A DNA stretch of 59,879 bases, counting the filler, from Bipalium vagum (Eukaryota): NCBI GenBank assembly GCA_037834085.1. It is 3 parts of 3 records of this genome, joined end to end, with 100 filler letters (N's around TTAATTAATTAA, not from the genome) between each part and the next. Parts side by side here need not be neighbours in the genome. Positions count along the whole stretch, not along the records: positions 1 to 20,090 come from JBBMKC010260580.1; 2 more parts are not named here. One strand, written 5' to 3'. The position numbers were made by a program, and so were the translations under genes. The notes under the pieces are model-generated. The model made no database searches. It was not told where the DNA came from and saw only the letters and a list, made by a program, of their open reading frames with translations. Positions 6,621 through 19,835 of this stretch are shown here, piece by piece; the stretch's first letter is position 1, and each line of letters begins with the position of its first letter.

Positions 6621-7122
6621 AAAACTAACCAATTTGTCGCCAAGTATAAATCGATCTCCATCAAATCATGATTCGGCATACCCAGGTCAAGGTTCGATAC
6701 AAAGATCACATGGTAATCAGACCCGCTATATTGAGAACAAAGAGCTGTCAAATATTCCAAATGACCCTTCTCCTATGCAGTCGCCATACTTTCCTGATCG
6801 ACCAGGTCGTTATGGACAGTCTAAGAAAGCTACTAATTTCGACACAGAAAATCTAATTAATAGTAGCTGTGCAACAAGTCTTGCCAGTAGTGGATCGTCT
6901 TTGGCAAATCAAAATACAATTAAAGTTCAGACAAAACCTAGAAACTTCAGATTTTCTTTTAGGACTGAAGTGACGAGTAAAAAATGTGCAGAGGAGCTTA
7001 TGACTGAAATCAAAAGGGTTTTAATTACATTTCATATTGATTATGAACAGAAAACAAATTTCTTATTGTTTTGTACATATGGAGAAAATAGTGGTGAAGC
7101 ACTCATGCAGTGGGAAATGGAG
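6621..7122 (+). CDS. par-1: MARK/PAR-1 serine/threonine kinase, penultimate exon (spacer + N-half of KA1 domain)
   Basis: ttctag acceptor at 6620; encodes KPRNFRFSFRTEVTS...MTEIKRVL...DYEQKTNFLLFCTYG...LMQWEME, matching MARK KPRSLRFTWSMKTTS...REIRKVLD...DYEQ..RFLLFCVHG...VQWEMEV; gtactt donor at 7123. Confidence 0.9.
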
Positions 7123-9223
7123 GTACTTTATTTCTATAGAGATATTCTTTTTAAAAGATTCCTTATTAAAAAAAATTTATTTAATCTGTTCAAACAAGAA
7201 AAATTAACATTTCATATTGTTATTTTCGTTATTTTATGAGAGTGCAATTATATATAACTTCTAGTGTTTATTTTAGTGGTTTCCAAACTTTAAACCAGTA
7301 TTGTATCAGATAAAAATTTATTATATGTAAGAAATGTAATTTTGATCTATTCATTTCTTGCGCCTTCTAAGTGTATAGTTAAACAAATACCATTCCTAAA
7401 CCTATAAAAACTAACATTAGATATTCCGATATTTAAAAGAAATTTTTATTTTGATTTTATTACAAATATAACTAATGTTATTGCTTTTTAATATTAGGCA
7501 AGAATTAACGCACCCTCCTAATAGTATATTAGATATAATATAATATAATTTATAATTTTATACAAAATTCATTCTATAATGATACTCATACATTCATCAA
7601 CTGTCTAAATGTTTTGATATTGTTTATGTCTAAAACTTTCTTAGTCTATCGCCTTTTAAGGTTATATTGCAAAGGCTATCTCAAAATTAATTAATTGAAC
7701 ATTAAATTATTTAATTAATTTTTATTGTTAACTCTAAAATAATTAAATATTTGTGCAGATTATTCAAATCTTATTTTTATCAAACTCCTGTCATGAAAAC
7801 TAGCCTATCACAAAAGTACATTAATATGTTTATTATTTTTGTTTTATTGATATTTTTAACAAAATTAATTTTTATTTCGAAAATTAATAATTTCCAGGTA
7901 CTAATTATAATTTGATTTAGAAAATTGATCAATTTATTATTTATATTATTTATTTTATTATGTTTTTTATATTTAAGATAATTATGTAATTTGTTTATCA
8001 TATTTATAAATGTCTCTTTAATATCAATTACATATATTATTTAATTAGTAATTATATTATATTAAAATTATAAAAAATAATATTTATATTTATCATTAAT
8101 TTTTATTTATAAAAATATCCCAATCTGGATATTGAGAAATGTATTACTAATAATAAAAATATTTTGCAGACAAAAATATTTTGCATTTTTGAATCATTTT
8201 CCAAAGCTGTTGCACAAATAGACCATACTAATTGGGAAATGATAAAGTTTAAAAGTTAAATTATATATTAATGAAAATCATAAAAATTATATTTCAATTT
8301 TAAAAACATAAAAATTTTTATATTGTTGACTGTAATGAATATTATGAAAAATTACTGAAATAAGTAGGGAAATAATAAGAAATAAATAATGTAAGAAATA
8401 AGTTGAAATAAATTTAATCATTTTAATTTTGAAAAATTGTTAAATATTTTTAGTTATATTAATATTAAAAAATATTTTCCAAATAATTCATTAATAAAAA
8501 GAATTTGGCTAACTTCAGTCATTTATCCACAATTGTTTAAAATGATTAAATTGATCAATATTATCATTTTAATACTTTAAATTTTAAAAATTCATTTGAT
8601 TAAAATAATTTTTATTTTATTAATTTTGAACTGTCCTCATTAGAACCATATTTCTGAATGTTCATTTTTATTTAACATAAATACTTTAAATAAATACTTT
8701 TTGTTTTTTTTATTGTTATAATAATTGTGTAAAAATAGAACTATTTTGCTCGACTCTAATTTTAATCTTTAATAAGTTGTTATTTATTTTTGTAATATAA
8801 ATGATCTGATTTTATAAGACAGAAATTATAAAAATAACCGATAAAATGTGATAGATTATCAATACATAAACAGCTGCAGCAGACTGCCCTTAATGAAATT
8901 CATATGAAATGCAGTGCTAAATAAAGACTGTCATTCATAGTTTCTATATCTAAAATATTAATTTTGAATATAGATTATTAATAGCTTAATAAAACAAACG
9001 GATAAAATGTTTAATTTTAAAAAAATTTACTAAAAGATAATTAATATTCAAGACTTCATTAAAGAAATATGTTTAATAAAACCATTTCAAAATGTATTTT
9101 TACACGTAATATTATTAAAACATTTAACAATTAAAAATGGGTTACCTTTCGACTTTCTGATAGTATTAATAATTAATCTTGATATATGTTTATTAATAAA
9201 ATTATATATATTTCTTTTATTAG

Positions 9224-14180: not shown

Positions 14181-14760
14181 ATAGATTCACAGTTTAGATT
14201 TTGAATTATGAATAAATTTCAATTTGTATTCGTTGTGATAAATTTAAAATAAAGTTTTATTCGTGGTGGTTTGATTTATTTTTGTTTTAAATTCGAAAAA
14301 CGAGCACAACACATTAAAGTGAGTTGTTGATATACTAATGCAAGTTACTATTAAGGTATAATAATAATAATGTATAATTTAAATAATTATTTTATTTATT
14401 TAAAAACATTTTTACTTTGAAAATTGATATCAATTGTTTTAAGAACTTAAGTTCCATTCTAATCCTGAACATAAAAATAAAAACTAAAATCACATTTTTA
14501 ATTCCTTTTTATCACATTCAACAATTTAAAATAATTTCTGAAGATTAAGATGGAAATCATAAAATTAAAATCAATGGAATTTTTATAATTCTTAATCCTA
14601 TAAATTTTAATATTTTCAATTACTAAAATTAATTTAAAATCAAAAGATCTAACTAAATTAACCTTTTATTAAATTGGTAAAAGATTATTTAGAAAAATAA
14701 AAATCATAAATATATATTCAATTCAATAAAAATTTGTTTGTTTATGTTAGCTGTTACATA

Positions 14761-15566
14761 ATGGATGAAAATTTAATTATTAAGTCCTATTGGGAAATAT
14801 GTGGATTTAATCAAGTACTAACATATTTTATTAGTCAGACTTATAGTTCTTTAGGAAGATATCAACAAATTTATTGAAGAAACCTCAATTAATAATAATG
14901 AAAGATACTTAATTAAAGTAAGATATTTCAAAAGAAGTGTAATTTCAGTTTTCCATTCAATTGTAAATCAATATAATAATTTTGATAAATATAATAATGT
15001 TTGTTTATGCAATTTAATTTTTCAGGAACATGAAACAGTTAATCATACGGAAAATGTCGCAGATGATATTTTATTAAAGGTTTATTTATTTAGTTCCACT
15101 AAACTTTCATAACCATAATTATTGTTTAGGAAAATGTTTTAGGTGAAGAAATGAATTTTCAAGAAATTCTTAAATGTGAAACCACTATTAAAGATGTCTT
15201 ATTGTATTTTTGTGTTTACGGATTATTATTTTCATTTGTTTTAATCTAGACCTTCCAAGATGCTGAAATCTAGCAAGATCTCATCCACAGATATTCTGAA
15301 GCTAGATTGCTTATTTAACAAATATTTCGAAATGGGCAAGAATAACTCTAATTCGACTTTTACGCTGGACAGTCAGAATGATTTAAACTGGGAGGGAGCA
15401 AAAGAATTGTCAGCAGTTTGGTCAAAGGCAGGTTATCACACTGGAGTCGTTTATGTAAGAATTGTTTTGATGAATTAAAAATATATCATTGAATAACCAG
15501 GGTATGTTAAATGGAACACACAATGAAGAGTCAGTACAGATGGAGTTATCAAAGTTGTGTCTATAA
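14761..15566 (+). CDS. smn: Divergent SMN-like (survival motor neuron) protein, 171 aa, 6 exons, no Tudor domain
   Basis: Exons 14761-14814, 14855-14917, 15026-15079, 15130-15203, 15250-15454 and 15501-15566 are all GT-AG and give one open frame. The N-terminus MDENLIIKSYW resembles SMN WDDTALIKAYD. The C-terminal WSKAGYHTGVVYG resembles the YG-box WYMSGYHTGYYMG. Two phase-0 introns sit at positions equivalent to human SMN1 K51| and M278|G279. Confidence 0.75.
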
Positions 15567-15687
15567 AATACAAAAGTGGACTGTGATATTTGTTTGTAAA
15601 TATGTTTTTAAATAAAAATCACGTAAAACAAAAGCGTAAATTATATTGTACATAAAAATACAGAAAAAACAAACAATTAATCGCGTT

Positions 15688-15973
15688 CTATGATCGTGTT
15701 TCTTGACTGCGGAACTCAGATTTTAGGCGAACAAACTCTCGGGCCACCTCATCATTGGTTCGCTGACTTAGAATTCTGAGAATTGTGCATCCAGTGTCAT
15801 CGATATGCAGCTTTGCACCGATGCTGCACCAGCATGCGCAACATGATTGGCTGAGTACATCTCGCAGTTGCAGAACTGTCAGTCCGATAAGCGAGTCCAG
15901 CCGACCGAAGCAGTAATCCTTTGCGCATATATGCAGCTCGTAATTGTCCGGATCCTCGTCCGAGCTTATGAGG
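15688..15973 (-). CDS. unc-13: UNC-13/Munc13, last coding exon (C2C domain end and C-terminus)
   Basis: [26 protein letters not shown]...[34 protein letters not shown] matches Munc13 YELQVCVKDYCFARED...[30 protein letters not shown]. Branch point ctaac and aaag acceptor at 15974. Confidence 0.95.
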
Positions 15974-17000
15974 CTTTGAATGAAATTAGTTAGGATCATG
16001 TAATGATTTTGTTCAAAAATATGGTTGTGACGTACGGAGATGATTTCTTTTAAAATGTTTGCACGGATCTTATTTTGGATTTAACACAGATATTGATTAG
16101 TGTAATACAAAATTCTGTATGGAAAAATATTTTTAGGTTTCTATTTATTATTAAATTCATTTTGTTGGTTTTCTATTATTTCGGATTTGTTTTATAATAT
16201 AAGAACTTGAATAAATATTTTAAGGTAAAAACGATCGAAAATTGAAAAAATTATCTGATTACGCTTTTTTAAATATACAAATATTTGGTATATTCAAAAT
16301 AAGTTATGTACTTCAGAACAAAAATATTAAGGAAGATTGTTTTCCAGATTTTCTTTTCAAGTTGTAGTCTCGGGTATCCTAATGAAAGATATTAAATTTT
16401 TCTGAAATTTATTTATTGGTTATTCTGAGTAAATGTTGATGTAATGAATATTGAATCAATAATTTTAAATGAACTCTAAGTATGAAAAATTAATTTTCTT
16501 CGCATTCATTAACATAATCAAACTTTTCAATAAATATTTTAGAAAAAAATTTAAGAAATATTTTTATCTAATGTATTGAGTTATCATTGAATAGTATTAT
16601 TTTTTAGGTCACAATTTTTATAAATAGGTAGAGTACATTTTATTTTAATTCTGATTAATTTAAATAAAATTTATTTAATTTCATTATTAATAAATTCCAA
16701 AGAAGCATTCAATAAACTATTTTGGTCTCAAAAATTGTCATTACATAAAAAAAAATCAATTAAAATGAAAAACATTTACTGATTAAAATCTGAAGTTGTA
16801 AGTGGTTTTGTTTGTTTAGTAAGAGCCTGTAGAGTTTTTGAAGAAATTTTATGTGATCAAAGCAAATATAATAAAAAAGAAAATTAAACGAAATGTTTTA
16901 AAATTAAAAACAAGTTTTTGAAAATAAAAATAAATGGAAATCAATTAAATACCAAGAAAGAATTTAATAAAATAATGCAACTTGAAATTATTTTACTTAC

Positions 17001-17740
17001 AATGTAAAAGTTTCGTTAAATTTTGGCGACCAGTTATTTGATTTGGTCTTTGTAGCAAACTTCCTGACTTTATCCTTCAAGGAAGGGCCAATTAAAACAA
17101 TTTCAATGAATGGTCTAAACATATTTGTGGTATTCCATTTTAATTCATTTGCAGCGACAACTAAAACGAAAACAATGAACATCTTCCTTGTTATTAATAA
17201 CCTTTCACAGTGACTTTATATTCGCCAGTATTGGGATGCTTCATAATATCTACCTGAATGGAAACTTCCCCAACTTGTTCTTCCACTGCTGGTTTATCTA
17301 AATAGTTACTCATGTTTACATGCTAATACTTTTTAGAGAAACAGGCGAAACCCAACCTTGGGATGTTTGAGTGCTAACAAAATTCTTTATCAAAGTATCT
17401 GTGGTCTCAGTATAGAGAGATAATGCGTATCTCAATGACTGCAATTCTGGACTTTTATCTAAATAGCTTTTCTTAAGTCCGATTCCTCCAGCATGAAAAT
17501 ATGTCTTGATTGTATCTAAGGCTACGTCAATAACTTGACACTGTCTGGGAGTTAAATTTTTTTCAACATCTTTGGACATATCCTGTTGACGTCATTAAAA
17601 TTAAAGGCATTGAAAACCCAAAAAAAAACTTGTAAAAAGTTGTTTGAAGGCATTTGATTACTAACATGATTGATGATGCTTTGGGACATTCCAACAATTT
17701 TAGCTTGAGCGTTAGTTGAAATATTAAGATTTAAGAATAG
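17001..17740 (-). CDS. unc-13: UNC-13/Munc13 exons 17630-17740, 17357-17582, 17202-17297, 17001-17160 (MUN/MHD2 end and C2C)
   Basis: LFLNLNIS...NNFLQ | [33 protein letters not shown]...[12 protein letters not shown] | [29 protein letters not shown] | [16 protein letters not shown]...[19 protein letters not shown]. Introns of 47, 59 and 41 nt with consistent phases. Upstream exons not found in the window. Confidence 0.93.
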
Positions 17741-18693: not shown

Positions 18694-19835
18694 ATTAGGT
18701 CTATGAACAAGTTTTATTATTTTTTAAAAAGTCTAATAATTAATTATTTATACAATAAAGGTTTAAAAAATAGATAAACGATAAACGGCCCATTATTGTC
18801 TATCGCTGTTTGTCAATTTCAGATAATTGAGGAATTCCAGAACGATAGAAAGTTTTAAGTTTTGTAGCAAGAAAATTATCAAAAAATTCTCATATCTCTG
18901 AAACATTTTTGAACTGAAATCCGGCCAAAAAATCTTGAATTGAACAAAACAGATGATAATCTGTAGGAGTTAGGTCCGGAAAGTAACCCACATAGAACTT
19001 CTCACCCTAATTATAAAATTGTTTCTTACGTATTCTTAGGCACATGTGGTCTGGCATTATCATGCAGCAAAAAAATCTTATGCGACTCTTGCCCGAAAAA
19101 GTCTTTTTCCTCTGTTCTTTCAAACAAATTTTACTTTAACATTCGGCATTAATAGTTTCACTTATTTGAAAGGCCTCATAACGAATAAGACCTATCATAT
19201 CCCACCATATGCAAAATAACTTTTTTGTGATGAATGTGTTCTTTTGCGATCGAGGTAGTGGGCATACGAGTGTCACCTAAGATTGTCTGCGCTAAGATTA
19301 TCATCAATTTTTCGTCTGCAACAATAAAATAGCATAATAAGTCTTTTCTTAGCCTATTGATAAGCGACGCTCATATTGTTAACCGGTATAAAAGATTGCT
19401 TTCTAACAAAAAATGTCCAGGCTTCTGAACTTTTATTATTTTGTGTAACCGTCTGATAATAGTTGATTGGGTGATTTTCATTTGTTTGGTTAGCTCTTCA
19501 TGAGCCAAAGCAGTATTTTTACTCGGTTAACATCACGTGCGTTGCTTCTAACTAGGGTCAGAAAAGACAATGGAATATTTTCTTTTCAAGTTTTCATTCT
19601 TTCGAAGAAAAGAGTAAACTGATTTAAATGAATTAGCAACATTTTTGCCCTTCTTTAACTCACTAATGTAGTATTGAATGTATGCTTTTGTCATTCGTTT
19701 TCAACGATATTTTTGATATTATATAAAAAATTATATTACATTAAACATTTCATAAATTTTAATTTGGGTAGAATTGTTAGATTAATATTTGGATTAGTTA
19801 AATGATGCGCGTAAAAAGACAAGTTATTATTAATA
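18694..19835 (-). mobile_element. Decayed mariner element
   Basis: Minus-strand HDNARPH (19040-19065) and YFPDLTPTDY (18955-18990); tattaggtc TIR-like start at ~18694. Confidence 0.75.

Follow-up and report, generated by a model that had tools for sequence, protein, structure and literature searches.

We report here on a gene in the genome of Bipalium vagum (GenBank assembly GCA_037834085.1), which lies at positions 14761-15566 on the plus strand of a stretch of 59,879 nucleotides (hereafter the window, three contig parts joined end to end, the gene being in the part from JBBMKC010260580.1). SMN is the small nuclear ribonucleoprotein (snRNP) assembly protein that is lost in spinal muscular atrophy, and we consider the gene to be a probable, highly divergent and Tudor-less SMN orthologue of this animal, with a probability of roughly 0.6. 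That it is an SMN homologue of some kind appears rather more probable. Two collinear motifs flank a protein about as long as yeast SMN, each accompanied by an intron at the human position. By a rough estimate, for which no P value was computed, these features, together with those of the individual motifs described below, would be expected to coincide much less than once per genome. Membership of the SMN family is provisional, because no SMN profile matches its exon pieces and because only one tyrosine of the characteristic C-terminal triplet is present.

SMN-like segments and introns at the two ends of the protein

Residues 26-51 of SMN are enough for nanomolar binding of Gemin2 (Sarachan 2012, PMC3462613; this and the other papers cited are drawn on through extracts of their text). 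Five residues of this segment (Leu39, Ala42, Tyr43, Ala46 and Val47) are buried, while Asp36 faces Gemin2, the human helix residues also including Phe50. The affinity for Gemin2 drops more than 100-fold with Y43A, 20-fold with L39A and 10-fold with A46N. Trp34 and Asp35 are invariant, Lys41 and Asp44 strongly conserved, and all four are dispensable for Gemin2 binding (PMC3462613). The first exon of the candidate (14761..14814, 54 nucleotides, 18 residues) encodes a similar segment, D2-Q18. When candidate Tyr10 is taken as the anchor and set against human Tyr43, Asp35 and Lys41 are also identical (Asp2 and Lys8), and conservative replacements are found for Asp36 (Glu3), Leu39 (Ile6), Ala42 (Ser9) and Val47 (Cys14), while Ala46 is replaced by Ile13. 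A pattern drawn up after the candidate had been seen, D[DE]..[LIVMF].K[AGST]Y, has a single match in the window and none in the six frames of 81 kb of control loci; a looser version gave one occurrence. The putative N-terminal helix fits the published Gemin2-contact pattern in part, which points to SMN, and Gemin2 is its proposed partner.

The C-terminal segment, ExxxVWSKAGYHTGVVY|G (the bar marking intron 5), was compared with the three motifs that define the YG domain: YxxGYxxGYxxG, SxxxSWxxSxxxT and GxxxGxxxG (Veepaschit 2021, PMC8287938; Gupta 2021, PMC8287954). The part encoded by exon 5 occupies 15398..15454, with the Trp codon at 15419-15421 and GYHTG at 15431-15445. Human Trp267, Gly271, Tyr272, His273, Thr274, Gly275 and Gly279 are kept. 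For the second motif the candidate reads ExxxVWxxAxxxT, in which Trp and Thr are retained, Ala stands in for one of the serines (Ser270) and the other two are lost. GxxxGxxxG is complete, being formed by G143, G147 and G151 of the candidate protein, the last of which is encoded by GGT, the first codon of exon 6, so that the third glycine is formed only once intron 5 has been spliced out. The YG box described in the first-pass annotation is incomplete: the three glycines and the central GYHTG are there, with one of the three tyrosines.

Human SMN exon 2a encodes residues 28-51, exon 2b residues 52-91, exon 6 residues 242-278 and exon 7 residues 279-294, with boundaries at 27|28, 51|52, 91|92 and 278|279 (2026 review, PMC13529492). 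The positions c.834+2 and c.835-2 given there imply that the last of these boundaries is in phase 0 (PMC13529492). In the candidate, intron 1 (14815..14854, plus strand, 40 nucleotides, GT..AG, with the donor GT at 14815) is in phase 0 and follows 8 residues past the conserved Tyr, which is the human 2a/2b boundary 51|52 once the motifs are aligned. Intron 5 (15455..15500, 46 nucleotides, GTAAG...CCAG), also in phase 0, separates the residue aligned to Met278 from the glycine aligned to Gly279 and so coincides with the boundary between human exons 6 and 7. Human exon 7 comprises 16 residues, and the candidate likewise has a short last coding exon after the split glycine zipper (exon 6, 15501..15566, 66 nucleotides, 21 residues followed by TAA at 15564-15566). 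The human residues and exon boundaries quoted earlier for comparison were confirmed from the papers (PMC3462613, PMC13529492). The claim that intron positions are identical to those of human SMN1 holds for only two of the five introns. Shared intron positions are supporting, not defining, of the SMN family.

The region between the two ends is acidic, rich in Asn and Lys and poor in aromatic residues, and no PF06003 match indicating a Tudor domain was found in the exon pieces or on the contig. Both the missing Tudor domain and poly-proline and the likeness to the layout of the fission yeast protein, as originally proposed, were upheld. Schizosaccharomyces pombe SMN (Smn1/Yab8) has 152 residues, with a Gemin2-binding domain at 10-35, an unstructured region at 36-119 and the YG domain at 120-147 (PMC8287938). 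According to this published description, the candidate, with its 171 residues, shares the succession of an N-terminal segment like the Gemin2-binding helix, a non-Tudor middle and a C-terminal YG-like segment, and genes for the S. pombe SMN partners Gemin2, Gemin6 and Gemin8 are all present in its genome. Unlike S. pombe SMN, it comes from an animal, whose genome has an unc-13-like gene and genes for PRMT5 and pICln, and it keeps only one Tyr of the YxxG triplet. Compared with human SMN1 (294 residues), it is without the extension of residues 1-33, the basic region of exon 2b, the Tudor domain and the poly-proline stretch.

Gene model and coding character of the frame

Recomputed from the sequence, the frame at 14761-15566 comprises six exons with 516 coding bases, giving 171 residues and then TAA. 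This reproduces exactly the six-exon open frame with introns of 40, 108, 50, 46 and 46 nucleotides that had been claimed, and the quoted peptides are present. The start of exon 1 is the earliest in-frame ATG; an extension in the 5' direction was considered and excluded, there being an in-frame stop at 14707 and no earlier ATG. Exon 2 (14855..14917, 63 nucleotides, 21 residues) begins the acidic, Asn- and Lys-rich middle and is followed by intron 2 (14918..15025, 108 nucleotides, GTAAG...TTTTTCAG, phase 0), which is too short to conceal a Tudor exon. Exon 3 (15026..15079, 54 nucleotides) encodes 18 residues, and intron 3 (15080..15129) has 50 nucleotides, phase 0 and GT..AG ends. Exon 4 (15130..15203, 74 nucleotides) holds 24 codons and two bases of a Leu codon split by intron 4 (15204..15249, 46 nucleotides, phase 2, GT..AG); the remaining base opens exon 5 (15250..15454, 205 nucleotides), which continues with 68 codons up to the YG-box-like ...W..AGYHTGVVY. 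At 15611..15616, 45 nucleotides past the stop codon, direct reading shows an AATAAA, which is likely to be the poly(A) signal. A pyrimidine-rich run with a terminal TTAG is seen at 14737-14760, 10 nucleotides upstream of the start ATG; one could speculate that it is the acceptor of an intron in the 5' untranslated region or of a spliced leader.

The window is AT-rich, with a GC content of 0.17-0.35 per kb, which makes short open stretches cheap, and codon periodicity was therefore tested. Of the 82 codons of exons 1-4, 26 begin with G, compared to 6 that have G at the second position and 6 at the third (chi2 29.3, p 5e-5). As a control, stop-free, low-GC segments of the same window were drawn at random in 5000 sets of four; this chi2 was reached by 5 of the sets and the share of G at position 1 by none. 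A small codon model, trained on 517 codons, gave exon 5 a score of +18.4 bits in the proposed frame, and this is the best-supported coding exon, its GC content being 0.385 against about 0.2 in the surroundings. The same model gave -0.2 bits for exon 6 and -0.5 to -5.7 for exons 1-4, with the proposed frame the best of six for each of these four, and their GC content (0.19-0.30) is hardly above that of the introns. We are confident that the gene is real, exons 5-6 being firmer than exons 1-4.

SMN pathway genes and competing candidates in the genome

Genes for several proteins of the SMN pathway were recognised in the assembly: Gemin2 (L002, contig C37848; 32.2 bits), Gemin8 (L089, C201415; 34.1 and 35.8 bits), Gemin6 (L090, C198140; 35 bits), PRMT5 (L079, C236800; 206 bits) and pICln (L081, C203536; 79.5 bits). 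The suggestion that this animal has a reduced SMN complex is not supported by this. Gemin8 binds the YG platform of SMN and Gemin2 its N-terminus (PMC3462613, PMC8287938), and with both binders encoded, an SMN is to be expected in this genome.

The sole PF06003 match in the assembly is a single-exon open reading frame of 175 residues on another contig (L001:1357-1884, G000:C150261). Its N- and C-terminal flanks suggest an SPF30-like (SPF30/SMNDC1) gene. Its scores against PDB chains do not separate the two families (29.9 bits for SPF30, 29.1 bits for SMN), and a protein search with it returned just two close SPF30 relatives, whose clusters carried no names. It was rejected as the true SMN, since it is without a YG or Gemin2-binding motif. 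As an SPF30-like gene it would fall in the wider SMN/SPF30 group together with the candidate; the two are different genes on different contigs, the one with an SMN-type Tudor and without the two terminal motifs, the other without a Tudor. In the alignment of the SPF30-like protein to the SMN Tudor from the PDB, Phe and His replace two Tyr of the ...YTGYGN... stretch, and the methyl-arginine cage of the only SMN-type Tudor of the genome may thus be altered too.

Two DNA-level patterns were used to look for a further YG box. GY[HY]TG has 75 sites in the 440-Mb assembly, and among them the candidate alone combines Trp at -4 with a long, open and coding-like frame upstream and an SMN-like context. 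WYxxGYxxG has 7 sites, all of them non-SMN, and no second YG-like site was found among these 75 and 7 pattern matches. The candidate locus is single copy at both the DNA and the protein level. The proposal of a divergent paralogue gained no support from these results, the only SMN-type Tudor being in the SPF30-like gene. The GY[HY]TG scan also brought up two dispersed repeat families. At least six dispersed open-reading-frame copies (L022, L024, L037, L049, L062, L063) share ...IINYQN.NQKGIHWVGYYTGYYFDSYGLPPLE and are probably a repeated mobile element, and another family (L010, L014, L044, L050, L051, L061, L073) has ...NCGYHTGKRLC... with stops upstream.

Evidence weighing against an SMN assignment

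Several results weigh against the SMN assignment, among them those of the profile and sequence searches, which gave neither an SMN profile match nor an orthologue. Exon pieces were queried individually. Neither PF20635 (SMN_YG-box), PF20636 (SMN_G2-BD) nor PF06003 matched the candidate, in exon pieces at E<=10 or in the genome at the locus, and the first-pass annotation had itself named the lack of an SMN profile match among its grounds for refutation. In Pfam, six exon pieces gave no family at E<=10 and four shorter ones no SMN family, with the limit that HMMER filters discard most matches above E ~0.1 and so hide weak ones. Genome profile scans with PF20635 and PF20636 yielded no matches, the control genomes being silent too. 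Matches of exon pieces to DUF7662 (E 0.05-0.09) and zf-DNL (E 0.28) were judged to be due to chance. A phmmer search of the PDB, in which exon 5, the read-through of exon 1 and a 24-residue YG piece served as queries, found no SMN chain; the lysozyme and BABP chains that appeared (E 0.34-1.2) were likewise put down to chance. A word search with exon 5, limited to proteins of 37-119 residues, found nothing, and a metagenome scan left none of 336 pattern matches confirmed. Against 1.84 billion representatives, phmmer gave 9 matches at E<=1e-3, all of them to repeat proteins of 404-4714 residues, which align with residues 11-65 of exon 5, in its middle and outside the YG part. Bacterial-type repeat domains were found in all four of the nine that were scanned with Pfam, and one of the nine was compared directly. 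The repeat proteins, which match the TFTLD..W part of exon 5, were rejected as relatives.

The residues themselves also leave room for doubt. At the N-terminus, Trp34 and Asp44 are lost, Met1 and Trp11 standing in their places. At the C-terminus, the candidate reads SxxGYxxGVxxG, in which only the central Tyr of the triplet (human Tyr272) is found; Tyr268 and Tyr276 are not retained, Ser262 has become Glu and Ser266 Val. GY[HY]TG gave 81 sites in the reversed control compared to 75 in the assembly, and with a frequency of about 0.007 for Trp at -4, one site among 75 is about what chance would give. This makes the core motif weak when taken alone, and the case rests on the conjunction of features. 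No RNA run with the locus came out of the search of sequencing runs; the sole run with it was DNA-like and yielded just two pieces of 18-19 bases. Finally, the candidate was chosen by a reader's eye, and it is odd that SMN alone should have diverged so extremely when the other pathway proteins are easily recognised.

Surroundings of the gene

An unc-13/Munc13-like gene lies downstream of the candidate, convergent with it on the minus strand (15688-17579 and beyond). Its MUN-domain exon (17316-17579) scored 93.6 bits, and between the exons that follow it are introns of 59, 41 and ~1000 nucleotides, with the last open frame ending at 15688, 121 nucleotides from the stop codon of the candidate. 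The introns of 41 and 59 nucleotides indicate that introns of such a small size, with weak donors, are nothing unusual in this genome. At ~18800-19130 on the minus strand we find what we take to be the decayed remnant of a mariner-like transposase, with an LLHDNARPH-type motif followed by stops and frameshifts. Its position on that strand is upstream of the MUN exon, probably within an unc-13 intron. A 34-residue piece of it had no match in Pfam. Further upstream in the window, at 6634-7239 on the plus strand, there is an open frame of 201 residues, for which no Pfam family was found at E<=0.01; its C-terminal half presumably resembles the kinase-associated KA1 domain of MARK/Par-1-type kinases.

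Discussion

Three other explanations have to be set against that of a divergent SMN orthologue. The apparent gene might be no more than a series of short open frames that happen to be joined by GT..AG pairs in AT-rich DNA: the window holds 429 stop-free segments of 18-30 codons, exons 1-4 have slightly negative codon scores at near-intron GC content, and the locus is without RNA support. We regard this as very improbable, given the rarity of the G periodicity among the random sets, the 68-codon open frame of exon 5 with its GC content and codon score, and the likely poly(A) signal downstream of the stop. If the gene is real, it might still be a truncated or divergent paralogue, the canonical Tudor-containing SMN having escaped assembly or detection. 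The assembly is very fragmented (272,664 contigs for 440 Mb) and leaves room for this; six-frame hidden Markov model scans view genes exon by exon, so that a Tudor split by introns of 40-60 nucleotides, which are common here, could escape them, and the DNA patterns are blind to a YG box whose residues differ or which is split by an intron. On the other hand, all six of the other pathway genes sought (SPF30-like, Gemin2, Gemin6, Gemin8, PRMT5 and pICln) were found, which suggests that the gene space is reasonably covered, and neither a second copy of the locus nor another YG-like site came to light. A paralogue beside a hidden canonical SMN is quite improbable.

The most serious competitor, which we nevertheless consider unlikely, is that of a real gene for a small lineage-specific protein functioning outside snRNP assembly, its SMN-like motifs and introns being coincidental or convergent. 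It would account for the negative profile and sequence searches, for the lost tryptophan, aspartate, tyrosines and serines, and for the similar abundance of GY[HY]TG in the reversed control, and it gains from the fact that the finding was selected by eye among about 1000 windows of the genome. It has more difficulty with two collinear motifs that occupy the proper ends of a protein of suitable length and that both precede a phase-0 intron placed as in human SMN, with a third zipper glycine made by splicing, and with an N-terminal motif missing from the control loci. It would also leave a genome with Gemin2, Gemin6 and Gemin8 and with no alternative candidate for SMN.

If the protein is indeed an SMN orthologue, its mode of action can be envisaged as follows. 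The amphipathic N-terminal helix (residues ~2-18) would dock in the hydrophobic pocket of Gemin2, and the C-terminal helix (residues ~134-153) would self-associate via its GxxxGxxxG glycine zipper, to form a platform carrying Gemin8, Gemin6 and Gemin7. Between them, the acidic, Asn- and Lys-rich middle of about 115 residues would act as a flexible linker, which replaces the Tudor and proline-rich regions. Sm proteins might then join via Gemin2 and pICln, and not through a Tudor that reads their symmetric dimethyl-arginine tails. The loss of two zipper tyrosines could lead to weaker or altered oligomerisation, or be compensated by Val148, Val149 and Tyr150.

In a literature search of partial coverage, we found no description of SMN in flatworms and none of a Tudor-less animal SMN. 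In a survey of Tudor genes from 2025, the median number of SMN-type 'T1' genes is 2 for endoparasitic flatworms, compared to 3 overall, and the missing 'T1' gene is not named (PMC12147562). The Tudor domain has been described as what sets the SMN of 'higher eukaryotes' apart from that of fission yeast (PMC8287938). Slightly short of an even chance, in our judgement, is the broader proposition that the only SMN of a bilaterian has lost the Tudor, basic and proline-rich regions along with two of three zipper tyrosines, while Gemin2, Gemin6, Gemin8, PRMT5 and pICln were kept. If this is true, Sm-core assembly in a metazoan would take place on a minimal SMN of the fission-yeast style, and methylated Sm tails would either need no reading by SMN or be read by another protein. 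Gemin2 docking and YG oligomerisation would be exposed as the core functions of SMN, with the methylosome and Gemins 2, 6 and 8 retained, and the protein would offer a natural test of the number of zipper tyrosines that oligomerisation requires. It would also mean that standard profile annotation can overlook an essential gene. Should the animal be a planarian, RNA interference would make the SMN question directly testable.

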